A stretch of 35,835 bases of DNA, from the NCBI GenBank assembly GCA_904063045.1, contig CAJFCJ010000116.1, positions 1 through 35,835 on the forward strand, given 5' to 3'. Every line of letters begins with the position of its first letter. Position 1 is the stretch's first letter. Below, piece by piece: positions 7,708-35,835 of the stretch. A program made the translations under genes and the position numbers. This stretch comes from Dimorphilus gyrociliatus. Its lineage: Eukaryota > Animalia > Annelida. The notes beneath the pieces are model-generated. The model searched no databases. It had not been told where the DNA came from and was given only the letters and a program-made list of their open reading frames with translations.

Positions 7708-10700
7708 ATGGGATTATTAAAATTAATGAATTTTATGTTATTTTTACTAATAACACCATTTAAAGATAATGTTATTGGTGTTAAAAATGTTTGTCTAAGA
7801 ATTTATCTATCAGACGAAATTGAATATAAAAATTTCACTATGGGCGAAATAATTGAAAATGATAATAGGAAAATAACAGCATTTGTTCATTTGTATCATT
7901 CTCGTGCAAAAACCAGATTTAATTTAACAATAAAGGATTCAAAATTGCAAAAAGTTGATACCAGTTTTAAATTTGGAAAAGGTATTTGTTCAAATGAAGG
8001 ATTCGATTCGTTTCATTTCTATATATGGAGTAGTTTTGTTGAAATGGGTAAGAAAAATGGCGTCTTTTCATAAAATATATAAAACTAATACATTTCCATT
8101 AACAAAATTGGGGGGAAAATAGAAGAAAATCCAGCTGAATTGAGGCTGTTCAAGGTTTATTAAATTGTTTAATCCTGTCTAAAACCAATTAGATTTGATT
8201 ACAATTTTCAATAGAGAGGTGAAAGAAGATCAAGTATTATTGTACGAAAATTGAGGAAATGCATTGATAAGAAAACAACTAGAATTCTTTTGAAAATAAC
8301 TTGTTTTAAAATTTCAGAACCATGTAACAATAAAGTTTTTTTTAAATTTACAAAACACAAATTCTCACTCTCTTTCTCTCTCAGTTTTTTACAGTTGGGT
8401 AATTAAAATGTACAAATCACCTTTATCTCAATATCAACTCTTTGTGAGATTAGATAACAAAGATTATAGATATTGTATTGACAATTTCACTGTTAGCAAT
8501 CCTTGTAAATTAAGATATTTGAAATGGTATCAAAGAACAATTCATAAAAGGATAACATATCATTATTTTTATGGTAACACTACTCATTTTAAAACAATCT
8601 CTAACGATCATAAAGATACGAAATGCTCCCCAGTAGAATGTTTAAATATTGCAGAAGGTTTGTCTATCAATATGCTTAAGATAAACAAAAAGAAAGAAAA
8701 GAAAACATTACAAACTTTAGATTTAAATACTAAAGAAATAAAACTTTTAAAGCATCCAATCAGAAATCAAGCATATGTTCCCTATATAAAAACTGAAAAA
8801 TATAATGAAATTGGTATTTTTATATCAGACATCAAATTCTTATTTCTTACAAAACATTTTCTGTGTCGGAGTTTAAATTTTAGGACAACTCTACCTAATG
8901 ACAATGAATTGAAATGTAAAAGCTTTACTCATCTAACTACATACACAAATTTCTTTACCACATTTTGCAATGGTCAAAATGAAATTGAATCTTTTAATGA
9001 TTGTATCATTAAAAGGAAGACGCCTAGCCCAAGTTCTTTAAGAATATGTGAGCTTCCTTGCAGTAATATATCCATTTCAGGTGAGAATACAAAGGCACAT
9101 GCACACACACTCACACTCTCTCTCTGCTTCAGATGAAAAGTATCGTATTTATGAAGAGTATCCATTAAATAATTCGCAAAGAATTGATGGATTTTTACAA
9201 GCAAATTTCCATGGAGTATGGCTAAATGTCCTAGTTATTCCATTATCTAATACAAAACAAGTATTCTTAAGACATTAAACTTTTTCTTTCTATTATTTAG
9301 CCGTTCTCTTTACAGTTGGTTTGCAATTATTTCGGTTATAAATACTCAACATTTTTTATTCCCAACCAAAGAAATGCAAGATGGTGGAATAGTTTTTTAA
9401 TAGCTAAATGCGACAATTGCAAACAATTGGATTGTTGCCAAATGTCATTTTTAGATATGGATAAGAAGGATATGGAAGATTTTTCATTATTTAGAATAAG
9501 CTGTCATAATTTACAACTTTTCGAAGAGTGTAGTAATGAGAAAATGGAATTGAATTTTAATGGAAAATGTTACTCATTCCACATTGGTCATCAGATGCTT
9601 TTCAATGAAGTAGAATCTTATTGCAGAAGAGAGAATAAATCAGTTATCAGTATTGATTCTTATCCAGAAGCTGCTATGTCAGTTTTAATGCACTCACACT
9701 TTTCATTCGATGAATATTTCAATATAAAATATCCGATTGGTGTGAACAAAAAATTCTAAAAGATTTCTAGATAAATAATTAAAAAAACATAGAAATTAAA
9801 AACCAATTTTTAAATGCAGATTTTATTTATCCAATGGAAATATCTGGAATGAATGGAATGTTTAGAGTTACGTAGGTTTCATTTATTGGAATATTTAAAA
9901 AAAATGTAAATTATTCACCTTTTTTGTAAATTATTCAAAAGCCATGTGGATAATTTGTTAGCAACTCATTTGGAAACAATTGTTTCTTTTGAGAAAGAAA
10001 ACTATTGCTTTTACGCCACGGGTTATAGACTTGTAAAAGTCAGCTGTCTTAGCAGGAAAATGTTCCAATATTTCATCTGCGAACAATCCTATAGTATGTT
10101 TTCTAAAGGCTTAAATGGAAGAGAAGAGAAGAGAAGGGAAGGGAAAGCATATATAAAAGTACTAGTTTGTAGATTCACCATTTTCTTCCTCACTTCCTCC
10201 CTCCCTTTCTTCCCGTCTTACATCTCTTATAGTTTTTCTCTATACAAAGTTTATTCTTTTACTAGATACATTACGAATACTAAATAGATTTTCCTATGAT
10301 AGATTAACACTGACAAACTCGTCATCTTGTCAATTTGGACAATTTATGTGTTTGACCTTGAACTATTGTATTAATTTAATAAATATTTGTGATGGAGAAA
10401 ACGATTGTACAGACGGAAGTGACGAAATTAATTGTCGAGATGCTAAATATAAATGTTCTGGTAATAGCAGCGATATTATATCGACTCAATTTGTATGCGA
10501 TTTCATTACTGATTGCAAAGAAAATGAGGATGAAAATTTTTGTCATAAAGAGAAAGATAATAATTTGTTAATATAGGCCTACAACCACCCCTTGAAGATA
10601 ATTTATATTTTGTTTTTCATCTTTTTCACCAAAAAACACAGTTTAAATTGTCGAAATGGACAAATGATTCTTAAGACTGAATTGTGTAATGCCGAGAAAA

Positions 10701-13700
10701 ATTGTTTCGACCAATCAGACGAAACTATAGCTTGTCAAGGTAATTTGACCTTGACCAAAGTAAAAAAAATTAAAATTCTACAAAAACAACAGAACTATGC
10801 GGAAAAAGACATTATTGTATGAAAAAGTGTCTTAGTTCAAATGAATATTGCGATATGAAACCGGATTGTTCAGAAATTTCAAAAGATGAAGATATTACCA
10901 AATGCTCAAGAATATTTCCCATTCGGTAACGAAAAAAAACAAACAAAAAGGATATTTTCAACCATTTTGCTTTTTTACATATTTAAATTGCAAATCTACT
11001 ACTCCTACAACACAAAACAGTAATTCAGACTCAAGAAACATCAAACAACTCTTTTTAAAATCTAACTATACAAGAGAAACTTCAATGACAAACTGCCGTC
11101 TTGTTTATAATTCATTTGGCAAACTTTTAACAAAAACTTCATTTCCTTATCTAGAACTTGAAAATTGTGAAAAGATAATTTGTAGGCCTGGAGAATATAA
11201 ATGTAAATATAAGAATTATTGTATTTCAATTAGCGAAATATGCGATAATACAATACATTGTCCTCAGGGAGATGATGAACAAAATTGCGGTACAATCTTA
11301 TTTTTTTATTTAAAAAATTCGTTCTTTTTACATCTTGGCTTTTTTTCACATAATAGAAAATTTCTTCCCTAAATTTACATTTAAATGTAAAAATCAAGTC
11401 AAATTTTTACAATCTTTCCAGTTTTGCAATAGAATTATTGACTGTAAACACGGTGATGATGAAAGATTTTGTCCAAATTCAAAAGATGAAGTTTGTCCAC
11501 AAAACTGCAATTGCCAACTTCTTTCAAAGATGAATTGTTCATTTGAAGGAAAAAAATTGATTTCAAATTTGAATGTCGTTTTCAAGTTGAAAAGTTTAAT
11601 TCTATTCGGCTTACCAGATTACTTTACAATTGATGTAAAACATCATTTGTCGTTGACCTACTTGGAAATAGGAGATAGTTTGACGAACAGAATACCCCAA
11701 CTGCAAACTTTTAACCTGGTTGTTCTGATTGTACGCAAATCTGGAATAAAGGCTTTAAACGTTACTGATTTATGGAATTATAAATATTTACAATATTTAG
11801 ATTTGAGCGATAATCCGTTTCATTTCGTTCCGCCATCATATTTTGAAAAATCTGTTAGAATATTGCACATAGATCTCTCCAAATCGAAGTTGAAGAGCCT
11901 CGAGAAATTTACATTCTCTTCTCTCAGCAATCTAAACACTTTGATTATAGCCGAATGCGAATTGAGTTTTATTCATCATCAATCATTTCATCATCTTACA
12001 AAATTGGAATATCTCTTCCTCAATGGAACGGAACTTCCTCCATTCCTATCCAATAGGCTTTTTGCAAAAATTTTCACATTGAAGACAATGATATCGGAAA
12101 GTTTTCAACTCTGTTGTATAGAGAAGAAAAAGGCATTGGGGATCGTTTGTCAACCAGATAAATCTGTTATTAAAAAATGCGATGATCTAATTGGAAATAG
12201 TAATTTAAGAATATTAATTTGGATATGGATCTTTTTTGGTGTTTTTGGAAATTTAATCGCCATTTTTCTCCAAATAAAATCATTTACATTTTCAAATACT
12301 TTGTGCATATTCCTGCATTTTTCCGATTTATCTCTAAGTGGTTATTTACTTGGAATTACTTGTATAGATCTATATTATAGAGGAGTATATATGGAGTACG
12401 ATTCAAAATGGAGATCTAGTCTAGGCTGTTCAATTTTGGGTGTATTATCAACTACAAGTGTAATATTTTCAAATTTTTGTATTCTACTAATCACAGCTGA
12501 GCGATATTTCGCAATTTGTCATTTGATAATTCATAAAAAATATTTCAAAAATCTTTTACAGTACTGTTTTTTTGCTTTGTCATTTTTATTCTTTTCAACT
12601 ATTTTATCAATAATTCCACTATTTTCATTTAAAGTTTGTTTCATTTTGTTATTGTTGTTGTTTTGTCTAACAAAAGTAAAAACAACATAGGCCTAAACTT
12701 TTGAAAATGATAGAAATCTATTATAAAATTTATATACAGTATATATAAAGTAATCTTCATAAAAAAGGAACACCTGAAATTTTGAATAGGCCAACATATT
12801 AAAAATGTTTTTTACTAAGAAAAATGATTTTTTTTACATTTTTTCTGCTTAAAATGTTAGATGAAGCTTAAATTTATATATAATTTTCTTTTAATTACGA
12901 TTTAGGTAAGATTTTACATCATTTTTTTTTGTTTATATTATGTTCTGTGTTATTGATTTTTTTTTCTTACTTGGCTGCACTTTATAATAAGATAAGGAAA
13001 AATCCACCAAATTTTTCAGCTCCCTTTGAATGGTTAATAGGCTAACATCTATGTCTAACTCTTTCAAAATTTTTCTTGCTGTCACCCTCTCCTTATTTTC
13101 ATTTTGTGTATAGCCCTCTTCATCCTGCCTATATATCTCTCTGTAAGTTTCTTTGGACAACCTCTATTCTCCTCTTCTGGTGGTTGATACCTTAAAGTAT
13201 TGCTAACAGAAGAGGGTGCCATTCCTAAAGCTCTTGCTGTGGCTTGTAGTTTTTGTAATTCATTGTATTTCTTGAATACAAGCTCCCTAATGTCTTTACT
13301 CCATGTCATATTTAAAAAAGTACAATAAAAATAAAGTAATATAAATGAAATTAACAATTAATTCATAAAGATAACTTAGAAAATCAAAGACATTGAAAAA
13401 AATGTTTGTTTGCAACATCTATTTGAATGCCAAACCAGATGTCAAGTGACTTTTCCAATAATTATGAAGTGGGGCGAAATAAAGAAAAAATTGATGAAAA
13501 TGACCAGAAATATTTTGCTTATGATATTATCATTACATAATTTTTTTTTTCAATATTACATAAATACAACCCTTTTTTATAGAAATTTAGACCAAAAAAA
13601 ATAATTTACAGTGAAAAAACAGTTTTAACCATTAATTAAAAATTGGCCTATCAAAATTTACCATGTCCATTTTTATGAAGTTTACTATATATATATATAC

Positions 13701-14746
13701 TTATTTATGACATTTAGGAATACTTTTCAAGGTCACCAGTTTGCCTTTCACTTCATATTACAATTGAAAAGACCAATGGATGGCAGTACTCTTTTGTGAT
13801 ATTTAGTCAATTAACATTTTTGCAGTTGGTGATAATAGTATATTTTTATATAAGAATAATAGAGAAGATAACAGAATCTAAAAGAATAAATAAAAAACAA
13901 TTTGAGAAAAGAATAAAAAACATTTTAAAATCAAGTTTATTAATTGTAATAACAAATATGATTTGCTTTTTACCAATTTCAATTTTAGGTCATTTGTTAA
14001 ATAAGATTTGACAAAGAAAAAGAAAGAATTTTGAATTATTTTTTTTTCCCAAAAACAACAGGTGTTTCAGTTTTAGTTGGAAATTTTGAAATTAATAGTC
14101 ATCATTATTCATTTATAACTCTGTTACTTTTACCCTTGAATTCAATTAGTAATCCATTTATATATTGTACATCCAAATTTTTCATCTATTTAAAGAAGAG
14201 AAGGAAGGAAAAAGTTGAGAATATTGCCAAAATGTAGTATTTCTTTTTTCGCATTTTTATCTATTTTATGAATATCTTCTTTCTTCTTCTTTGAAAGGCT
14301 TAAATTATTATCTGATATTGAACTTTTGGAATGTAGAGAATGTAATTGTTCTTTCTATAGAGAGATAAGTATCATTCAATTACCTCCTAAAATATTTCTC
14401 TTTTTCAGTTCATGATTTCCTACTAAATTTAGATTTACATGGAATTCTGTTGGAAACTAAATTAAAAGTTGAAATATTGAATATAAATTTAATAGAGAAG
14501 AAATCAATCAAATACATCTATCAATTATTTTTTCATATAATTCATTCAATTATGATAATGCATTTACTATTTTTGGGATTTAAAAAACAAACTACAATCA
14601 TTGAAATTTTTACTGCCAAATCAAGCAGTGGTACCATATTTCTACTACGATTAGATAATTTGGAAAAGAGAAGGAATGAATTAGAGAATGCTAATGATAT
14701 TTTCATTTATGGAAAATATTTTAATAAATTTTTAAATAGATTTTAA
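7708..14746 (+). CDS. GRL101: GRL101-like LDLa-LRR G-protein-coupled receptor, paralog A (spliced), with SRCR-like and CTLD-like N-terminal modules
   Basis: Signal peptide MGLLKLMNFMLFLLITPF (ATG 7708). SRCR-like LCRSLNF..C..ESFNDC and VCNYFGY. CTLD GKCYSF...VESYCRRENKSVISIDS...FICE. Six LDLa repeats at 10346-11470, then LRRs. 7TM exons 11357-12633, 13718-13988 (EYFSRSPVCLSLHIT..GWQYS) and 14062-14233 (NSISNPFIY). Canonical ERY and NPxxY motifs. It ends at 14237 if unspliced, or at 14746 through two extra exons. The exon(s) at about 8050-8400 were not resolved. Confidence 0.85.
11357..12633 (+). CDS. Paralog A large exon: last LDLa, LRRNT, LRRs, TM1-TM4
   Basis: Within ORF 11335-12690. AG acceptor at 11355-11356 and GT donor at 12634. 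LRR motifs LQYLDLSDNPF, LNTLIIAECEL and LEYLFLNGTEL. Hinge CC..C....SVIKKCDDLI. TM3 ITAERYFAI. Confidence 0.9.
12746..13687 (-). mobile_element. Non-autonomous Tc1-family element (internal deletion derivative) in an intron of paralog A
   Basis: Imperfect TIRs of about 50 bp (12746 taaagtaatcttcataaaaa...taggccaa; 13641-13687 reverse complement), flanked by TA. Frameshifted transposase N-terminus from ATG 13309 (MTWSKDIRELVFKKY...GMAPSSVSN...ERVTARKILKELDIDVS), homologous to the 30-32 kb element. The DDE domain is deleted. Confidence 0.85.
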
Positions 14747-15002: not shown

Positions 15003-17803
15003 ATGCATAGACTCTTGTATTCTTTCTCCATTTCCTCCTTCTGCTCCTCCTTATTCTTCCTCTTTTGCCCTATGCCTTTGAAAGTCGAAATGGCGAAAAA
15101 TTGCCTTCCAAATCACTACACAAATACAGCAGAACAAAGTATAGATAATTTAAAACTAGGACCGACATTATATGAAGATAAGGAAAAAATAACAGCTAGT
15201 GTCCTATTCACTGATTCAATAAGCAATTCAACTCTTTTAACAATACATGAAGAGAATATGTTTTTTCCTATTGAAGATTCAATTCTAGTGAACAATCTGG
15301 CAAAGAGACTATGCATGAAATATCGAAACAACGATCCTGAATTTAATTATATTCATAAATATTCCATTTTGAAAAGTAAGAAAATATTGAAAATATGAAT
15401 ATTTTCAATAAATTTTTGTTTTTTATAGAAGAAGTTGTTGCATCAATTAAATTACATTTTTATTCAAAGGAATATTTCGAAATGTAAAGAATTTTAATGA
15501 TTTTTCTATTGAAATATTTGAAATAGTTTTTTCAATTCATTATTAGATCTTTTAAAAATTGCGGTATTAATGTCTCAATTGTCGATGTCTTAAGAGTTAC
15601 TTGCTTCAAAATGGATAATCCTTGTAAATTATGATATTTAAATTTAAATTGATCTTTCAGTAAATTAACGTTTATTTTACTTTGGTGTGAATTTTGGGGT
15701 TAGGAGGGATAGATCATCTTAGCCCTCCAAGAAAGGCAATGATTATTTTACTAAAAGATCCAGACATTTTACTTGTCGAGTGGCAAGTTCAATGTCAAGA
15801 TTTTTGCAATCAAATCTTTATGTTTTTTTTTTCAAAGTTCTCTTTACAAAATCCTATTCGCCTAATGAGATTTTACATGTTCGCTATCTAAACGTTACGT
15901 ATTTTTATAAACCATTCGAAAATTCGACAATTGGCAATCTGTGTTATAATTCTTATTTGTTTCGAACTATGAACTATGAAAAATTAGTGGAAATTGCTCG
16001 TAGAAAAATTTTTTATGGAAATTTTACGAATTTTACTATAATATCTAGAAAAAATACAAAAAGTGATCAAGAGTTGTTCAAATGCGATATGACTGTAATT
16101 GGTTAGAATATATTTTAAAAAAATGTCTACCATTCTACTCTTTGTTTGTTTGTTTAGATGTTGGACAAGTTCATCTTATCAACTTGAATAATTCAACTTT
16201 TTTGGACAAGTCAAATATAGTTTATCCACGCTTTATATCAAAAAAATATGGAATGATTACTATTACTATGGAAAATAATCTTCATACTATCTATTTAATT
16301 TGTCGATTAATGAATTTTACAACATTCAATTCGGTAATGAACCATTGCTCTATCCATTCATCACTCGCTAACAATAATCTTCGATTGGACTGTCCTAAAA
16401 ATGCTATTAATTTGTCGGATTGCTCATTTAAATCTTCATTTTCCACATATTTAATGTGCACAATTGAATGCACGAAGGATGATGTTGTTGACGGAGACGA
16501 TTGCAATTATCATGAATGAAACAAAACAAAAGATAACGGCGTTTTCTCTTTTTGCAGATAAAATGGTATTTTTAAATGAATCTCAAAGAATTTTATCTGG
16601 AAATAAAGCTATATTAACTGGTTATTTAAATATGATAATGTTTAAAAAATACTTTAAAGTATCCGTTCCTCATGCCCAGAGTCATGTTTTCAAGGTAAAG
16701 AAAGGAACAATCGTATCAGACAGCAAAAACTTTTCAATAAATAAGCAGAAAATTCGGATGTGGTAGAAAACGGCCATAAATGTGTGGTTTTACCCTAACC
16801 CTAACCCAGGCCTTGTTTTTGCCTAACCTTTTTGAATACCCCTAACCCTTAGATGGGACCCTCCTAAGAACATATCAACAGTTATCTTATTCCTCCTAAC
16901 CATTTCCCAGGCTGAAATCTAACTTTCAAATATTTCATTTATGGCCGTTTTCGACCGGTCCCGGAAAATTCAGCCATATTCTCTGTTAATTTTTTTTCCT
17001 TTTAATTTCAGTTGGTGTGTATGAGTCTTGGATTTTCATCGGCCTCCTTCGAACTCATCATTAACGCTATAGCTGAAAATAAAGTTTCAGTTTCCTGTTC
17101 GAAAAATGTGAAGAATATAAACGACTGCAAATTCATAGATTTCAACAACAAAACTTCGAAAATTACTCAAAGAATAACGTGTCATAATGAAAAACAAATT
17201 GGTAAATTTTAATATCTAATCCTTAATTAGGTCAACGTTCATTTCATTTGGAATTTATGCCGCTTATCTATTGTTTTCAATCAATCAATTTATCTGTTTT
17301 TCCTTTTCAAGATTGCAACAATAAATCGCAGTTTTTCTACGACAATAAATGCTACTCGTTCGGTAAAATTACAACTACCGCAAAATTTTTGACGAGGGAC
17401 CAAATAGCAACTCACCAATGCAAACAGTTAAATATGACTATATTGGAAATTAGTTCTTTTATGGAAAAGATTCTTATTCTGGAACGTGTCATTTATACAA
17501 TACTGGAAAGTGGAGCAACGCCAAGTTTTCAGGAAGCAACCATGTCTGACTTTATTACTATTCCTCATAGTTTGTTTTTAATACTGCAATATACGGAAAG
17601 ATTTACAAGAAAATTCAAATTATCCTTTTCAGCTGTTAGCCGAACACAAGCCGGCATTGGTGTTCAGATTGAGACTTTGTAAGAAAATAATGATAAGATA
17701 AGACTCTGAAGATTAGAGAGAGGATGATAGCAGTTAGGGTTAGAGAACTTTCGAATTAATGTTAGTGATGACTGGATAGGTTCTGGTTTCGTAACCGCTC
17801 TTC

Positions 17804-17834
<31 letters not shown>

Positions 17835-20800
17835 TTTCTTCTACTCCAATCAAACCTTTTTTTTTCAAGGGAGTACCTCACTCAAAAATTAGAATACGGC
17901 ACATTTTTAACCAAAATAAAATCAGTCTGTGAGTTGAAGAAAATGATTATTCTTTGAGCAGGCTTACGTTAAAAAGTTAATCCTATTTCAAAAAGATAAC
18001 GCTACAATGTCTTTTGGATATATACACAGCAGAGAGACGAATATTATAATATGTGAAAGTGAAGGTTAGAAAAGAAAAGAACAATTTCATAAAATTTACA
18101 GGTTACATCATTCTGTTGTATTGTTATTTAATTGAAGAGAATAGAAAATTTCGTTATTCAAATATCATTCAAAATGAAAAGAATCAAAAATGTCTACCTG
18201 AACAGTTTACCTGTAAGATTGACAAATTTTGTATAAATACTATCAATGTTTGCGATGGATTTAGAGATTGTTTTGACGGAAGTGACGAAGAAAATTGTAC
18301 CAGTTACATTCCATTTACCTGTACGAAAGATTTGAAAATAAATAGTAAACTGGTATGCGATTTTATTCGAGATTGTCCAAACGGTACTGACGAATTATTT
18401 TGCGGTAGATCATCGAAATTCAATAAAAAGTATTCTATCCATAAAAAATTCTTACTGTCCATAACTTTTTACAGAAACTATTGATTGTTCTCAATCAGAA
18501 AAGTAGGATCAAAAATATCCTCATCTAATATTATTATATACATAAAATTGCACAGATACTACCGATGCAACAACGGACAATGCATTCCTAGATCAAAATA
18601 CTGCAATTTACAACCTAACTGCTTCGATTCAACAGACGAAACCAAAAAATGTCCAGGTAATATCGCTCAATTCAAACCTTTCATTTGATCTGTAGAATAC
18701 TGCGTATATATTCAGATCCGTGCTCTGCTTATCAGTGTAATGCAAACTGTCAAACTGGATATTTAAAATGCAAAAAGGAAAACTACTGCGATATTTATCA
18801 GAAATTTCCAGATCATTGTTTTCAGAAATGGAGAAAGTAAATATTTCGAAATTTTTCAAAATGTCAATAGAATAAACAAACAAAAAAAAACAAATACAGT
18901 CATTACCAGACTTATGAAGAAAATATGAACCAGTTTTTTCAGGAATTGAACTATACAAGAAAATATAGAAAAACAAATTGTAGATTGGTTTACAATTATT
19001 TAAATCAATTAGAAACCGCTCTAGGATATCCATTCAACGAATTGGATAATTGTTTTGAAATGAGATGTCAAGTGGGAGAATATCAATGTCAGTGGAAACA
19101 TTACTGTATACCTTTCGAACGTGTTTGTAATAATATTACTGATTGCTATTTTGGCGATGATGAAACTGATTGCCAAAACTACAAACCTAAATATGCTTTT
19201 AAATGTAAAAATCAAAAAAAATTTCTTACATTAACCACAGTTTGTAATGGAATTATTGACTGTAAACACGGTGACGATGAAAGATTTTGTCCAAATTCAA
19301 AAGATGAAGTTTGTCCACAAAACTGCAATTGCCAACTTCTTTCAAAGATGAATTGTTCATTTGAAGGAAAAAAATTGATTTCAAATTTGAATGTCGTTTT
19401 CAAGTTGAAAAGTTTAATTCTATTCGGCTTACCAGATTACTTTACAATTGATGTAAAACATCATTTGTCGTTGACCTACTTGGAAATAGGAGATAGTTTG
19501 ACGAACAGAATACCCCAACTGCAAACTTTTAACCTGGTTGTTCTGATTGTACGCAAATCTGGAATAAAGGCTTTAAACGTTACTGATTTATGGAATTATA
19601 AATATTTACAATATTTAGATTTGAGCGATAATCCGTTTCATTTCGTTCCGCCATCATATTTTGAAAAATCTGTTAGAATATTGCACATAGATCTCTCCAA
19701 ATCGAAGTTGAAGAGCCTCGAGAAATTTACTTTCTCTTCTCTCAGCAATCTAAACACTTTGATTATAGCCGAATGCCAATTGAGTTTTATTCATCATCAA
19801 TCATTTCATCATCTTACAAAATTGGAATATCTCTTCCTCAATGGAACGGAACTTCCTCCATTCCTATCCAATAGGCTTTTTGCAAAAATTTTCACATTGA
19901 AGACAATGATATCGGAAAGTTTTCAACTCTGTTGTATAGAGAAGAAAAAGGCATTGGGGATCGTTTGTCAACCAGATAAATCTGTTATTAAAAGCTGCGA
20001 TGATCTAATTGGAAATAGTAATTTAAGAATATTAACTTGGGTTTGTATTTGTCTTGTTAGTTCCGGAAATTTAATCGCCATCCTTATTCAAATAAAATCA
20101 TCTAAACCTATAAATTTTGTGAAAATTTTCCAATATTTTTCCTATTTAACCTTAAGTGGCTATGTAGTAGGAATTGCTTGCATAGATGTATATTATAGAA
20201 GAGTGTATATGGAACACGATTCAAAATGGAGATCTAGTCTAGGCTGTTCAATTTTGGGTGTATTATCAACTACAAGTGTAACATTTTCAAATTTTTGTAT
20301 TCTACTAATCACAGCTGAGCGATATTTCGCAATTCGTTATTTAAATATTTACAAGAAATACTACAATAATGTTAAAATAAAATTAACAAGTCTAACTGGA
20401 AGTTTGTTGATAATTGTATTAATATCGTGTATTCCGTATCTATCTGTAGAGGTAGGCCTATGAGAAATATATGAAATATTGAAATGAATGATTTGAATAA
20501 GAGATTGAATTTTTGTAGAATTATAGTTATCATTCAACATTTTGCTTTTTATTTGTTAAAGATTTAAATTTGAAAATTATCAACATTTATTCATTTTTTT
20601 CATTAAATTGTTTAATCTTTCTGATGTTGTTAATCAACATTTTAATTTACTTAAAAATCTATATCTTTATTCTAAAATTGGAAACTTTTAAAGGGAAACT
20701 TTTAAAATTAAGGAATCTTTTTAGCAATTTGTGGCAAATTGGTTTTATGTTTGAATTTTCAATTTCAAGTGAATTTGAACAATTTGAACAATTTTAAAAC

Positions 20801-21564
20801 TTTTGAATTTTTGTTTTTAGGTTTTTTTGTGAATATAGTTAACTCAAAATTGGATAATTCATATTTTCTATTGATAACAATTGTGTCGTTGTTTGTACAG
20901 AATATACTGTTTGTAATAAATGATTTGTTTTATGCTAGAAAAGAAAGAATGGCATTGGCGAAAACAAAAATGTTTGTTTTTGTTTTGAATGGAAAGACAA
21001 AATATTTAATTATTTAAATGTTTTACAGGCAAAGACACGTGATAATGAAGAAAAGAAATACAAGGAGAGTTCGTTAGTGTCTCGTTTATTAAAGAAAAAG
21101 AAAATCGGTTTTTGAAATATTTCTCTTTTTTAGATAATGATATTCTGATTAAGTGTTTCCTACTCAGAGTGTTTGTCAATTTTGATATGAATGTTGAAAA
21201 ATTTCATCCTTCAATGTTCCAAGATGAACAATTCATTTGTCGTAAAGACAAACTACTTCTATTCTTAAATTTTAACAAGCAAATATTTAAATCAATCTTA
21301 CAACTTGACAATAGAAATTTGTCATTTAAGAAAGATTTACAAGAACTACCAGTTTATTTTACTGTACAAGTTTACTTTTTCTTCTTTATCATTCTTTTTT
21401 ATTTTGCTATTAAAAAACAGACAAGAAGAAATAATAGAGAAAAGAAATTCTACATTGCTTTGGAAGATATGAACCAAAATGGCGACGATAATACTTTAGA
21501 AAATAAATTTAATTTATACGTTTTCGGCAACTATTTGAAAGGGTTTATAGAAGAATTTCATTAA
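15003..21564 (+). CDS. GRL101: GRL101-like LDLa-LRR receptor, paralog B (spliced), with atypical 7TM C-terminal half
   Basis: Signal peptide MHRLLYSFSISSFCSSLFFLFC (ATG 15003). SRCR-like ICRLMNF...LDCPKNAINLSDC and VCMSLGFSSA...SCSKNVKNINDC. CTLD DNKCYSF...HQCKQLNMTILEISS. Five clear and one degenerate LDLa. Large exon 18900-20451, then exons 20519-20741 and 20821-20971 with the same intron phases as paralog A. Probable extra exons 21029-21072 and 21134-21564. Confidence 0.8.
16762..16956. mobile_element. MITE-like element, copy A, with internal telomere-like CCCTAA motifs (intron of paralog B)
   Basis: Perfect 16-bp inverted repeat gaaaacggccataaat (16766-16781) / atttatggccgttttc (16937-16952), extendable to 20 bp with one mismatch. 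Internal ccctaaccctaaccc. The interior is homologous to 31543-31748. Confidence 0.75.
17804..17835. repeat. (CT)n microsatellite in an intron of paralog B
   Basis: ctctctctctctctctctgtctctctctctct read directly. Confidence 0.9.
18900..20451 (+). CDS. Paralog B large exon: Cys linker, two LDLa, LRRNT, LRRs, TM1-TM4
   Basis: ORF 18925-20463. AG at 18898-18899 and GT at 20452. LRR block nearly identical to paralog A. ITAERYFAI in TM3. Confidence 0.9.
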
Positions 21565-22308
21565 TATTTTTATCTACCAGTTTTCTTTTCTTGTAAAAAT
21601 TGAATAAATATTTAAACAAAAACAAAAACTTGAATTCAATTAAAATTTTTGCAGTAGAAAAATTTTAAAGAAATTAAAAAAACATTTTAAATAATTGGTA
21701 TTATGATTTCTTTTAATATTTGTATAAAAACTATATACATAGGGAAGAGAGAATGAAGAGAAAGTGAAAGATATCATTTCAATCTTCTCTATATTGTCTT
21801 AATTATAAGTATTTTTCAAGAATTACAAAATATGCATTGTCTTAGCTTTGCAATAAACAAAGAGCTTCTCTTCAAATATTTATTCTTTCATGTTGGCCAA
21901 GTTTCATTTGAATTTCAATATTTTATTCAGTTTGGTATTTTTTTTCCTTCAGGAAGAGAAGATATTTTTCTTAGAAATGACAAAGCTGACGTACGATTAC
22001 AGAAATGAAAGAATCATTGATATTTTTAATGCAGGCCTACTAATAAAAAATTTACTACATTGTAATAAATGTTAACATAGCCTTAACTTTATGCAATTAT
22101 TTTGCTTGTAGTATTAATTTAATATCCTATTATCATATTTCTGAATGATAGAAAATTGTTTACAACAAACGAAAAAATCTTCAATTTATGAAAGAGAGAA
22201 GTAATTCAGAAAATGTATATCCTTATTTTCAAAGATTACAAAACAAGGTGAAGGAACACTTTAAGTTCATCCACAAATAGTCTCAATAACTGACCTTTGT
22301 CAGAAATT

Positions 22309-22540
22309 ATTGTTCTATATTTACGGATGTACCGAATTAGCAATCCGTCTAATTTCTATTTTTCGTTGTGCTCATGCAGACTCGACCATGCTTTTATAGG
22401 CGACAGTTAGGCACTGCTCAACACCTGTTCTGACAGCCACCAATCATTTCTCTCTAGAAATATTAAATTGATTAATACCATCTGTCACATGATAGAAAAA
22501 TCCTGTAGAGGGCATTATCTGTTCTTTTCTATTTAAAAAG
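22309..22540. repeat. Dispersed 232-bp repeat of unknown family, copy 1
   Basis: Colinear with 35164-35395 (attgttctatatttacggat...ctatttaaaaag) with scattered substitutions and no net length difference. Confidence 0.85.
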
Positions 22541-23314
22541 TAATAAAATGATTTCATTAAGCACATAAAACTTTATTGTCATATTAATAAAATATTTAAA
22601 TACTTGGAAATGTTCTATTTTAAGAGAAGCTGCGAAAAACTGTGTTCGGGGTCGACACAAACTTCCCCTGAGGATAAAGTTTAGGGTTACTTTTAGTTAT
22701 TTTTAATGTTAGGAATATATTATATTATATTAATACTGATCTACATAAAAACAAAATTGAAAGTTAGTAACTAAAAAGAAGGAATCGCTTCCCCTGCAGT
22801 GGCAATAGGGTAAAAGTGAGAAATAGGCGTTCTTTTGTCCAGCATCTAACATATCATCATTACATAATTCACACAACTCTTTGTGTCAAGTGAATAAAAA
22901 ACTACAGATATTTACATAATTTGGTAATTTTAAATTCTTGTTTGTTCATCTCTTCTTGGTCATAATAAAGTATTCTATATTTATTCTATTTATAAGCTTT
23001 TAAGGTTAATTGAGAAAAATTGTCTTTTAACTTGAAATTTCGTCATCAAATATTCAACAGCAAAAAAGTAATAATGATATCGAAATTGGTGTGTTCTTGA
23101 AATATGCAACATGTTCACAAACCCAGTTATTTTATTAATAATAAAAAAACTACTTGCCATATAAAAAATTATTCATGCTTGATCATCTGTCTATATTCCC
23201 TCATATAAAACAGCATATGCAAAGGTAACAATGTCGACAACATACATTACTAATAAAATACCTTCTCATTCATCAGACATTCTCTATGAAATATCCAGCT
23301 AAGGAGAAATAAAG

Positions 23315-23571
23315 ATGGCGGTCACCTGGTCCAATTTCTCCAATGAAACAACATTTCATGGAATAAAAAATATCTTTGATAAAAACTACTCACTTTTTCG
23401 ACGTCTTATTTGGACCATCATTGTCTTGGGAGCAATTTCTCTCTTTTCCTATCAGGTGTATTCCAGGCAATATGACTTTAGAAAGAGGGAAGTGGCTGTT
23501 AACATTGAGATGATCTATCCTAATCTTCTCGAATTTCCATCAGTGACCATCTGTAACCAAAATAAATTCAG
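23315..23571 (+). CDS. DEG/ENaC (ASIC/amiloride-sensitive sodium channel family) first coding exon; remaining exons not found
   Basis: HG motif (ETTFHGI), TM1 (RRLIWTIIVLGAISLFSYQVY) and the family signature FPSVTICNQNKFR, ending at a GT donor (23572) in phase 2. May be a pseudogene fragment. Confidence 0.85.
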
Positions 23572-23882
23572 GTAATTTATCTTCTCCATAGTTAATCAAT
23601 TGCTTTCTTTAAATGTTTCAAAAATGTACAGAATGAAGCAGACATTTTTAACTGTTCTAGTCATTTTTTGTATGTACATGTTACTTTAGGTGAAAAGTAT
23701 ATATTCTATGGATTAAATGATATCGTCTTATCTGGAAGTAGTTCAAAGTTAAATATCAGTATAGTTGATGGTTTTTTGTTTTCTCTATGGAATGGTCAAT
23801 GGTTTCTAATTTTTGTCAATCCATTTGATAAATATTCAATATCCGTAAGTAATGTATTGTTTTATAGATGAAGATTTCATTC

Positions 23883-30315: not shown

Positions 30316-31313
30316 CTACTTTTGTATGTGCCCACCCTCTCTTTCTATACATTTGCTTATTCTACGGCCCATTCCCCCATATAAGCCTGGCAACAAGAGT
30401 GGATTTCTGTTGATAACCTCATAGGAGCATTTCTTAATCTTTTCCCACAGTTCATCCTCTGTCTCAAACTGTGGACCATCATAGACCATTGTCTTGGTCA
30501 GATGCCACATGTTCTCTATTGGACTTAGATCAGGGCTCCTTGCTGGCCAATCTATGGGCTTGTTATTATTACTTTAAAAGGCCCTTTTTGTTTTTCTTGC
30601 AGCATGACAGCCAGTATTGTCTTGCTGGAAGATGTACTGCCTGCCCATTTTTGCCTCAATTTCTTCTATGACAGGCAGAACATCTTCCGCAATGAAGGAG
30701 CTATAGTTTTCAGCATTCAGCTTGCTCCTTATCCTCCAGACTTCAAATATGCTGTCAGAGGTTATTAACCCCCACACCAATACTCCACCTCTCCCCATAT
30801 TTATTGTGACCCTGAAATCCTTTTCGCTGTTACTGGTCCAAGTCCTAAAATCGTCAGGTCCACTTAGTGAAAACCTAGCCTCATCAGTACAAATAACCCT
30901 AGACCAATCTAGATTTTCGCTAATAACTTTGAGGCAGTACGCTTTTCTGAGTTTACAGTCTTTGGAGGTGAGATCAGTTCTTTGTCTGACTCTTTTATAT
31001 TTGAAATTTTGTCTTTTCAGCTCCCTCTGTATTGTTCTTATGCTTACATCTACTTCTAATTCTTTTAATATCTTTACTGCTGTCACTCTTTGCTTGTTAT
31101 CTTTCAGTTTCTTTAAAATTCTTTTCATCCTCTCTATCTCTCTGTCGGAAAGCTTCTTCGGACCTCCCTATTGTCTTGTTCTGGCTTCTTATACTTTAGT
31201 TTGTTGCTAATTGATGATGGTGCCATTCCTAAAACTCTTGCTGTTGCCCTTAATTTGCCTATTTCACTATATTTCTTGATTACCAAATCCCTTATATCTT
31301 GACTCCAAACCAT
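30316..31313 (-). pseudogene. Tc1 transposase pseudogene (DD34E)
   Basis: ATG 31313 MVWSQDIRDLVIKKY. Frameshift at about 31166-31168 and in-frame TAA at 30574-30576. Catalytic motifs CTDEARF, FQQDN and SPDLSPIEN, with 34 codons between the second D and the E. Confidence 0.92.
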
Positions 31314-31542
31314 AATTAAAAAAATACAATATAAATTATGTACAGTAATTTTTAATATTCAATAACTAATTAACTTAACTTAAAACAGGAAAAAAGTTGA
31401 AAAATTTTTTGTTTGAGATGTCTATTTGAATGTCAAACCAGATGTCAACTCAATGTTCCAATAAACATGTTGCGCGGCCAAATAAAGAAAAAACTTATGA
31501 AAATTATTAAAAATTTTTGCTAATAATCTTCACAAAGGATAA

Positions 31543-31748
31543 GACAGAAAACGTCCCCAAATTCATGATTTAACCCTAACCCTAACCTAGCCCTTGTCTC
31601 TCCTAAACCTTTTTGATTGCTCCTAACCCTTAGATTGAACCCAGTTAGGGGGGTTCAAAAAATAAATCAAAAGCTGCTTTACCCCTCCTAACCATTTTTC
31701 AATCCGAAATGTTGCTTTCAAAAATCTCATTTGGGGACGTTTTCTGTC
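31543..31748. mobile_element. MITE-like element, copy B, nested in the Tc1 element
   Basis: Perfect 20-bp inverted repeat gacagaaaacgtccccaaat (31543-31562) / atttggggacgttttctgtc (31729-31748). Internal ccctaaccctaacc. Absent at the homologous position (about 13520) of the related intronic Tc1 derivative. Confidence 0.8.
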
Positions 31749-32196
31749 GGCCCCCTTGACAAAATATTATCATTTTCTTAAATTTTTTTCAATATTATGT
31801 CAATTTAACTCTTTTTCTATATAAATTTAGACAAAAAATACTAATTTGCAGAGGACAAACAATTTTAACCATTAATTAAAAATTGGCCTATCAAAATTTA
31901 CGGTGTCCATATATACATGTCATCCACTTTATATGTAGTCAACTAGCACATCGTCTAAATTTGGCAGCGAAATTATCGTAACGTTTTATATAATTTTAAA
32001 CCTGTTCTTACCCCCTTATCATTCAGTTTGTGTACGAGTAATACTTATAATTACTGCTATATTACCAGTATAGACTTTAAAATTTAACGCGCTGTACTGA
32101 TAAGTCAATGACGTAGAAAGGACTTATATCCGCAACTACATATATATATATATATATTACTTTTTATACTAGTTTATTTGACATTCGAACGTAACA

Positions 32197-35163: not shown

Positions 35164-35395
35164 ATTGTTCTATATTTACGGATTTACTGCATTACCAATC
35201 CGTCTAATTTTTATTTTCCGTTGTGCTCATGCAGATTCGATCATGCTTTTATAGACGACAGTTAGGCACTACTCAATACCTGTTCTCACAGTCATCGATC
35301 ATTTCTCTGTAAAAATTTAAAATTGATTAATACCATCTTTCATATGATAAAAAAATCCTGTGGAGGGCAATATCTGTTCTTCTCTATTTAAAAAG
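35164..35395. repeat. Dispersed 232-bp repeat of unknown family, copy 2
   Basis: Homologous to 22309-22540. Confidence 0.85.
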
Positions 35396-35835
35396 ATATA
35401 AAAACGTAAGAAATCCGTGAAAGAATTAAAACTAGATGCAAGAGAAAGTGCGGCTATATAGTTTATAAAAAAAATCCTAATTCCATCATTATCTTTACTT
35501 CATGCTTTCATTCTCACTAATCTTTAATTGATCAAATAAAAGAAGCTTATACAGCTGGATTGAGATTAGTAGGAATGTAAATAGTCCAATGCAGTAAATA
35601 AATGATTTATGAATTAGACTAAAAACTATACAAAGTCATAACATTTTCTGGTGCATCTTTTACCTTACTACAACTTTCTAAAATTGCCTTCGCTAATTAT
35701 CTCTCAAGTGACAAGACTTTATCAATCTGAATAACTGGACAATAGTTCTACAGCTGGATTCTTTACAGATAAACAATTATTCATTTTCTTTAAAACTCTC
35801 TCACCGATATAATTATTTATACTGACTCTAGATTT

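Follow-up and report, generated by a model that had tools for sequence, protein, structure and literature searches.

Two near-identical tracts on a saturated background: probable interlocus gene conversion between tandem GRL101-like receptor genes of Dimorphilus gyrociliatus

Introduction

How can two stretches of a single exon be almost identical between neighbouring genes when the remainder of both genes has diverged to saturation? This question is raised by contig C116 of the annelid Dimorphilus gyrociliatus, the whole of which (35,835 nucleotides, 28% G+C) constitutes the DNA analysed here and is referred to as the window. It carries two tandem paralogs, designated A and B, which lie in the same orientation 7.8 kb apart and which, judged from their sequences, are receptors with multiple LDLa modules, a leucine-rich-repeat (LRR) ectodomain and a seven-transmembrane (7TM) domain, that is, GRL101-like members of the G-protein-coupled receptors that contain leucine-rich repeats (LGRs). 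The assembly examined comprises 77.9 Mb in 349 contigs, and the published assembly of this species is described as ~78 Mb in ~350 scaffolds, with a median intron length of 66 nt (PMC7854359). Introns at the locus are short, measuring 53-95 nt in read-derived spliced contigs.

A preliminary description, made from the letters of the window, had proposed that recent ectopic gene conversion homogenised A and B over the LRR and hinge region and again over the first extracellular loop (ECL1) and third transmembrane helix (TM3). The proposal of conversion over these two regions holds up well: interlocus gene conversion between old tandem paralogs is very probably the answer, because silent sites are homogenised within the tracts (synonymous divergence, dS, of 0.013 and 0), a run test rejects a random placement of the differences, no third copy was found in the genome, and contigs derived from reads branch at the four tract borders.

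Two sharply bounded tracts within one exon

Self-comparison of the window at a fixed 7818-nt offset shows a match confined to ~11357-12555, within the large exon of A and the homologous part of B (Table 1). The two exons align gap-free over their entire length (11357-12633 against 19175-20451), and outside the large exon A and B are not alignable as DNA. Identity inside the exon is distributed in patches. Tract 1 differs at five of 786 positions (11457, 11913, 11959, 12176 and 12177; 99.4% identity), exactly those given in the preliminary description at this offset, and spans the second half of the last LDLa module, the LRRNT, the LRRs and the hinge, reaching the first residues of the first transmembrane helix (TM1). 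Tract 2, which comprises ECL1 and TM3 with its ERY motif, contains a single difference, as had been claimed, located at 12464 and causing an I/T change (99.2% identity). The intervening block of TM1, the first intracellular loop (ICL1) and TM2 differs at 47 of 180 positions (74% identity), the left flank inside the exon (11357-11431) at 25 of 75 (67% identity), and beyond 12517 about 50% of sites are mismatched (~45-50% identity), in agreement with the heavy substitution first reported for the TM1-TM2 interval and for both flanks.

The left border of tract 1 falls in the middle of an LDLa module within the exon, again as first described: a spliced 67-nt intron lies upstream, and the reading frame is continuous through the border. 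The domain labels originally attached to the three segments (LRR and hinge, TM1-TM2, ECL1-TM3) agree with the reading of the open reading frame (ORF) and with Pfam. Paralog C, a third family member cut by the start of the contig, had been placed outside the sharing and does not carry the tract, its identity being only 67% in DNA and 35-44% in protein.

A run test of the GENECONV type, one of the checks proposed in the preliminary description, gave a longest perfect A/B run of 455 nt; when the 131 mismatches were permuted 100,000 times, no run of that length arose (maximum 140 nt). Were mismatches to occur at the background rate of 0.356, a 786-nt stretch would contain no more than five with a probability of 7e-140. 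The neighbouring differences at 12176 and 12177 (AAA versus AGC, K/S) are set 41 nt in from the right-hand border of tract 1. Read-derived contigs contain each of the two versions, and the pair may have arisen through a dinucleotide substitution that postdates conversion, or may mark a small patch left unrepaired.

Three age classes at silent sites

Silent-site divergence was obtained from Nei-Gojobori counts, expressed as dS or as the proportion of differing silent sites (pS). Tract 1 contains two silent and three replacement differences and tract 2 one replacement difference, with ~187 silent sites over the tracts. The middle block has a pS of 0.377 and a dS of 0.52, the exon flanks of A and B have a pS of 0.62, and the pooled upstream LDLa exons reach 0.725. 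The overall background stands at a pS of 0.70, and the middle block is lower (bootstrap p=0.002). Since a pS of ~0.70 is the level expected by chance at 28% G+C, the background is saturated, and the paralogs are therefore very old. Three age classes coexist in one exon, with dS of ~0.01 in the tracts, ~0.5 in the TM1-TM2 block and saturation in the rest.

A whole-genome DNA search returned no third copy of the tracts, or of either version of the middle block, beyond A and B, the next best match (C5:265392-265846) showing 68-73% identity over the hinge-to-TM3 region. Overwriting of the middle block from a third paralog was considered as a source of its intermediate divergence and rejected, as no such donor is present in the assembly.

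Read-derived contigs containing the tract borders

Reads were used in the form of assembly-free k-mer contigs covering positions 10400-13400 of A, with reliance on positions rather than on depth. In a DNA run (X1), one contig (10400-11487) leads from the unique flank of A through the left border and ends 30 nt past the first A/B difference, a second (11458-12217) covers tract 1, a third (12188-12427) carries A's own middle block, a fourth (12398-12516) coincides exactly with tract 2, and a fifth (12487-12807) carries A's right flank. The contigs thus break at all four tract borders and overlap the next contig by 30 nt (k-1) each time, which is the behaviour of a de Bruijn graph whose reads hold two continuations per border. 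Depth was 236 in the shared contig and 97 and 113 in the A-unique contigs, values that agree with two copies but are to be read with caution.

A second run (X2), which belongs to a different study and is spliced and RNA-like, contains a 455-nt contig identical to the tract and a 344-nt contig that passes from the tract into the middle block of B, with B letters at 12176, 12177 and from 12218 onwards. The same tract-to-B junction at 12217/12218 is present in a third, RNA-like run (X3). In X2 and X3 the introns of A at 10738-10790, 10925-11019 (both removed in an X2 contig) and 11289/90-11355/56 are spliced out, and these spliced contigs indicate that both genes are transcribed.

Further pairs with sharp tracts in the receptor family

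The large-exon family has at least 94 copies in the genome (546 candidates at a first look), many of them clustered on C5, C36, C34, C146 and other contigs. The D. gyrociliatus genome paper lists nine expanded families only and refers to a "conserved GPCR repertoire" (G-protein-coupled receptors), its main text making no mention of the multi-LDLa LRR 7TM family (PMC7854359). All-against-all DNA comparison of the 94 copies disclosed six further high-identity pairs; when their flanks were included, each proved to be a sharply bounded tract with 1-18 mismatches between neighbours that are otherwise unalignable (Table 1). Several of these tracts cross introns, which places the copying at the DNA level, and several have shoulders of intermediate identity. 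The C75/C99 pair has two tracts separated by ~220 nt, an arrangement resembling that of A and B; its two members lie on distinct contigs and might be alleles. The tracts of the sister pairs fall on different domains, the 7TM half included, so that nothing marks the LRR as a special target.

Converted exons are also richer in G+C at third codon positions (GC3), with a median of pair means of 0.31 versus 0.22 in 76 unconverted members (by pair, p=7e-4). In the columns of tract 1, GC3 is 0.30-0.35 in A, B and the other converted pair and ~0.17 in eight unconverted paralogs. We infer from these values that conversion is GC-biased, the raised GC3 fitting a biased conversion of long action.

Weighing the explanations

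Interlocus conversion would begin with a break in one gene that is mended with the neighbouring paralog as template, by non-reciprocal copying. Repeated copying of this kind would keep, or make, two stretches almost identical, with the rest of each gene diverging to saturation. The convertible island would have shrunk as flanking divergence blocked the extension of heteroduplex, the TM1-TM2 block dropping out earlier and both tracts being homogenised again very recently. Such recurrent conversion, with a shrinking island from which the TM1-TM2 block escaped before either tract, is favoured to a modest degree, because the silent divergence of the middle block lies below background and points to repeated conversion with stepwise escape. 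Recency, as first claimed, accordingly holds for the tracts and fails as a description of one isolated event, the middle block (pS 0.38 versus 0.70) recording a layered history; the divergence claimed for the signalling half is likewise seen in the unconverted parts, but the middle block is younger than the rest of the gene.

For the last step, the alternative that fares best is a single recent conversion whose tract was left discontinuous, by mismatch repair acting in patches or by template switching, and whose two partner paralogs had already diverged fully and had undergone no earlier conversion. The two tracts are equally diverged (0.64% and 0.84%), and the paired tracts of C75/C99 are in keeping with such an event. 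It is nevertheless unlikely, because the lower silent divergence of the middle block requires at least one older homogenisation that covered it; furthermore, strand invasion at 60-70% identity is not expected from the established requirements for homology, and the higher GC3 seen in converted exons is suggestive of prolonged exposure. A recent partial duplication or unequal crossover, which tandem genes in direct orientation would permit and which would produce a chimeric gene, is highly improbable, as one breakpoint is expected and four are observed, all in one exon, and as both genes retain their own flanks on either side with spacing and frame unchanged.

An assembly or polishing artefact, in which consensus mixing occurred or Pilon wrote one copy onto the other, was named in the preliminary description as the finding that would undo its reading. 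The contig is short (35.8 kb), and the published assembly derives from PacBio reads of an older kind, polished with Quiver and Pilon and processed with HaploMerger2 (PMC7854359). The X1 contigs, however, branch exactly at the four borders and span the flank-to-tract junctions of A, and contigs from the second study join the tract to B's own middle block. Short reads, moreover, cannot be mis-mapped between sequences 60-75% alike, and polishing could therefore not have created a 786-nt tract; an artefact is in effect excluded. Strong purifying selection preserving identity without copying has a negligible chance of being correct, for although the tracts contain the functionally important ligand-binding LRR and TM3 with ERY, their silent sites are homogenised too (2 differences in ~187, versus saturation elsewhere) and other paralogs share only 32-42% protein identity over the same columns, so that selection cannot account for the identity and is ruled out by dS as the sole cause.

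As to the direction of the last transfer, each score is a distance to four outgroup paralogs scaled by the average distance that separates these outgroups from one another. The score is 1.12-1.19 for the tracts, 1.16-1.22 for unconverted A and 1.42-1.52 for unconverted B. In its unconverted parts A stands as near to other paralogs as these stand to one another, which is not true of B. Because the scaled distance of the tracts is A-like rather than B-like, the last transfer probably ran from A into the fast-evolving B. A maximum-likelihood tree built from the unconverted columns recovers A and B as sisters (96/96), their branches measuring 0.37 and 0.70, respectively, and in the tract columns these branches are 0.011 and 0.009; the topology is consistent between the converted and unconverted parts, and branch lengths differ by ~50-fold. 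Incongruence between trees was considered as a signal of conversion and set aside, there being no topological conflict with A and B sisters in the unconverted part as well. In the middle block, A has 51-57% protein identity to other paralogs and B 38-39%.

Several points weigh against this account of recurrent conversion from A to B. The intermediate age assigned to the middle block depends on 59 codons, and the start of conversion at only 65-75% likeness is unexplained unless conversion was continuous. The direction depends on a rate argument rather than on an orthologue from another species. In B, the left border, the border between the middle block and tract 2 and the right border were deduced from branch points rather than seen in B context, and X1 is perhaps the assembled sample, so that its independence extends to the assembler and not to the animal line. 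Finally, the GC3 excess is a correlation across seven pairs, for which expression or regional composition could be responsible.

Gene organization and receptor identity

In both A and B the open frame contains LDLa repeats and an LRR_8 match, as well as the first half of a 7TM domain of the rhodopsin type (Pfam). Multiple N-terminal LDLa modules (PF00057) occur in several exons of A and several of B, and the LRR ectodomain, followed by a hinge, is recognised by PF13855 at 3e-13 and 5e-13 in the A and B frames. Exons were searched singly; the 7tm_1 matches in two exons of A (23.5 and 26.8 bits) each fall below the whole-protein cut-off of 30.5 because the domain is split between them. ERY and NPFIY motifs are readable in the open frames of A, and in B only TM1-4 are recognised. 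By sequence, the nearest solved relatives are FSHR, LGR4, LHCGR and RXFP1, matches in the PDB including LGR4/5, and the best named database matches of the A large-exon protein are clam "GRL101-like" receptors with 26-27% identity. LGRs with multiple LDLa modules have been termed GRL101 or type C2 (PMC4079206). A and B share with these receptors the repeated LDLa modules, the LRRs and hinge of the ectodomain and an ERY-bearing 7TM domain of rhodopsin type, in B recognisable as TM1-4 only; A has NPFIY as well. They differ in the size of their family, which counts at least 94 members within 78 Mb of genome, and in the lack of recognisable TM5-TM7 or NPxxY in B.

A protein word search with the large exon of A gave a best match of 35% identity and no close kin within a length window of 248-775 aa, a blank that says little because this window leaves out full-length receptors. 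That match (P0001) was traced to contigs in two Logan runs, which added nothing. The ORF of B had no exact match in public contigs, a set that possibly does not include D. gyrociliatus records.

The donor GT of A's large exon was placed at 12634 by homology with B. In B the open frame extends upstream to 18925 and lacks A's 67-nt intron, reading straight through at the same codon (19173/19174); comparison of the two sequences indicates that this intron was lost or gained between A and B, and open-frame lengths suggest that its presence varies across the family. The upstream LDLa exons of A and B are 45-54% identical in protein and 54-64% in DNA. In one low-depth X3 contig, 65 nt (GT..AG) at 11203-11267 are skipped within the penultimate LDLa exon of A; a 21-nt remnant (11268-11288) stays, and the frame is kept in combination with the 67-nt intron. 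The skip could reflect a minor splice form, or noise.

Downstream, the TM5-6 and TM7 exons of A were identified with family profiles built from seven or eight paralogs. The same profiles recognised no such exons of B at 20300-23300 (best score 0.037), and ORFs downstream of B had no significant Pfam match. Two open frames in this interval, at 20570-20797 and 20712-21014, resemble degenerate TM5 and TM7, with no NPxxY.

Table 1. Positions of the receptor gene parts in the window, of the shared tracts and of converted pairs elsewhere in the genome
Feature	Position	Strand	Basis or comparison
Tract 1, A copy	11432..12217	+	5/786 mismatches vs 19250-20035
Tract 1, B copy	19250..20035	+	5/786 mismatches vs 11432-12217
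Middle block of A, unconverted (TM1, ICL1, TM2)	12218..12397	+	B counterpart 20036-20215; 47/180 mismatches, 74% identity
Tract 2, A copy (ECL1 and TM3 with ERY)	12398..12516	+	1/119 mismatches vs B
Tract 2, B copy	20216..20334	+	1/119 mismatches vs A
Large exon of A (last LDLa, LRR, hinge, TM1-TM4)	11357..12633	+	ORF; acceptor spliced in X3 contig; LRR_8 and 7tm_1
Large exon of B, homologous part	19175..20451	+	ORF; Ldl_recept_a, LRR_8, 7tm_1
Intron of A, 67 nt, phase-1	11290..11356	+	GT..AG; joint 11288 to 11356 in X3 contig
Upstream LDLa exons of A	10319..11288	+	Pfam Ldl_recept_a; B counterparts within 18182-19173
TM5-6 and TM7 (NPFIY) exons of A	13718..14234	+	Family profiles 1.2e-33 and 4.5e-28; Pfam 7tm_1
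Paralog C, LDLa repeats and LRR start	1..~1400	-	tblastn; cut by contig end
C5 pair	536621-537618 / 542865-543862	n/a	998 nt, 1 mismatch; 7TM half, not LRR
C146 pair, inverted	40707-43133, partner near 48717-51370	n/a	2427 nt, 2 mismatches
C36 pair	147303-149420	n/a	2118 nt, 18 mismatches
C21 pair	925183-926804	n/a	1625 nt, 13 mismatches
C5 pair, inverted	265707-266709	n/a	1003 nt, 5 mismatches
C75/C99 pair	C75:73645-76527	n/a	620 nt and 2042 nt, 3 and 6 mismatches

Other elements in the window

An intron of A houses a repeat (12730-13400), in which the minus strand carries a helix-turn-helix ORF resembling Tc1/mariner (13082-13357). In X1 the repeat has a k-mer depth 10-30 times that of the gene, more than 30 genome copies exist at 86-92% identity, and a second, diverged copy lies at 31168-31915 in the window. 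Downstream of B, an exon at 23315-23575 was recognised by eye as a candidate N-terminal part, with the first transmembrane helix, of a channel of the ENaC/degenerin type; ENaCs are among the families reported as expanded in annelids (PMC7854359). Dispersed direct repeats with 72-89% identity (22309-22548 / 35164-35403 and 16756-16962 / 31537-31754) are probably fragments of mobile elements.

Discussion

Interlocus gene conversion is a well-known process, with textbook cases in human TLR1/TLR6, the fetal globin genes, RHD/RHCE, opsins and CYP21, and no new mechanism is revealed here. In Drosophila, conversion has been the subject of a genome-wide survey (PMC2588116). The pairs described above share with conversion between tandem paralogs in general the sharp-bordered tracts of 0.1-2.4 kb, the homogenised silent sites and the disregard of exon and domain borders. 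They differ in that the A/B background is fully saturated yet the tracts are less than 1% diverged, in that two tracts flank a block of intermediate age, and in that at least seven pairs occur in one receptor family. A population-genetic model by Teshima and Innan reportedly treats escape from concerted evolution, in which divergence at the edges halts conversion within a shrinking island. The three age classes in the exon, the intermediate shoulders of the sister pairs and the raised GC3 would fit such an escape. In the literature collection searched, no paper was found linking D. gyrociliatus with gene conversion in its genes; the one paper in which both terms occur deals with minor introns.

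A broader and more tentative proposition, to which rather little confidence is attached, is that interlocus conversion is unusually pervasive, long-lived and GC-biased in D. gyrociliatus and keeps single modules identical between old receptor genes. In its favour stand the seven pairs in a family of at least 94, all with tracts less than 1% diverged on a saturated background. Depending on the pair, the module kept identical would then be the LRR or the 7TM half.

With read-derived support and three age classes in one ungapped exon, A and B offer a clean case of layered conversion. They also carry a warning for annotators and phylogeneticists, as the identity between A and B is 98% over the LRR and ~55% elsewhere, and trees of the family change with the segment used. 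Because seven pairs with tracts over different domains and raised GC3 are available, the genome could conveniently serve to measure tract lengths, homology limits and the GC bias of ectopic conversion in a spiralian. For the receptors themselves, the suggestion first made, that both would present the same LRR with different outputs, is correct as a description of the sequences, given the near-identical tracts and the long branch on which TM1-2 and TM4 of B lie. At the level of sequence, B carries the LRR, hinge and TM3 of A on a divergent and perhaps non-signalling 7TM half, an arrangement that may be selected or may be a by-product; under the broader proposition above, a role of B as a partner or decoy obliged to see A's ligand may be what would maintain the tracts.

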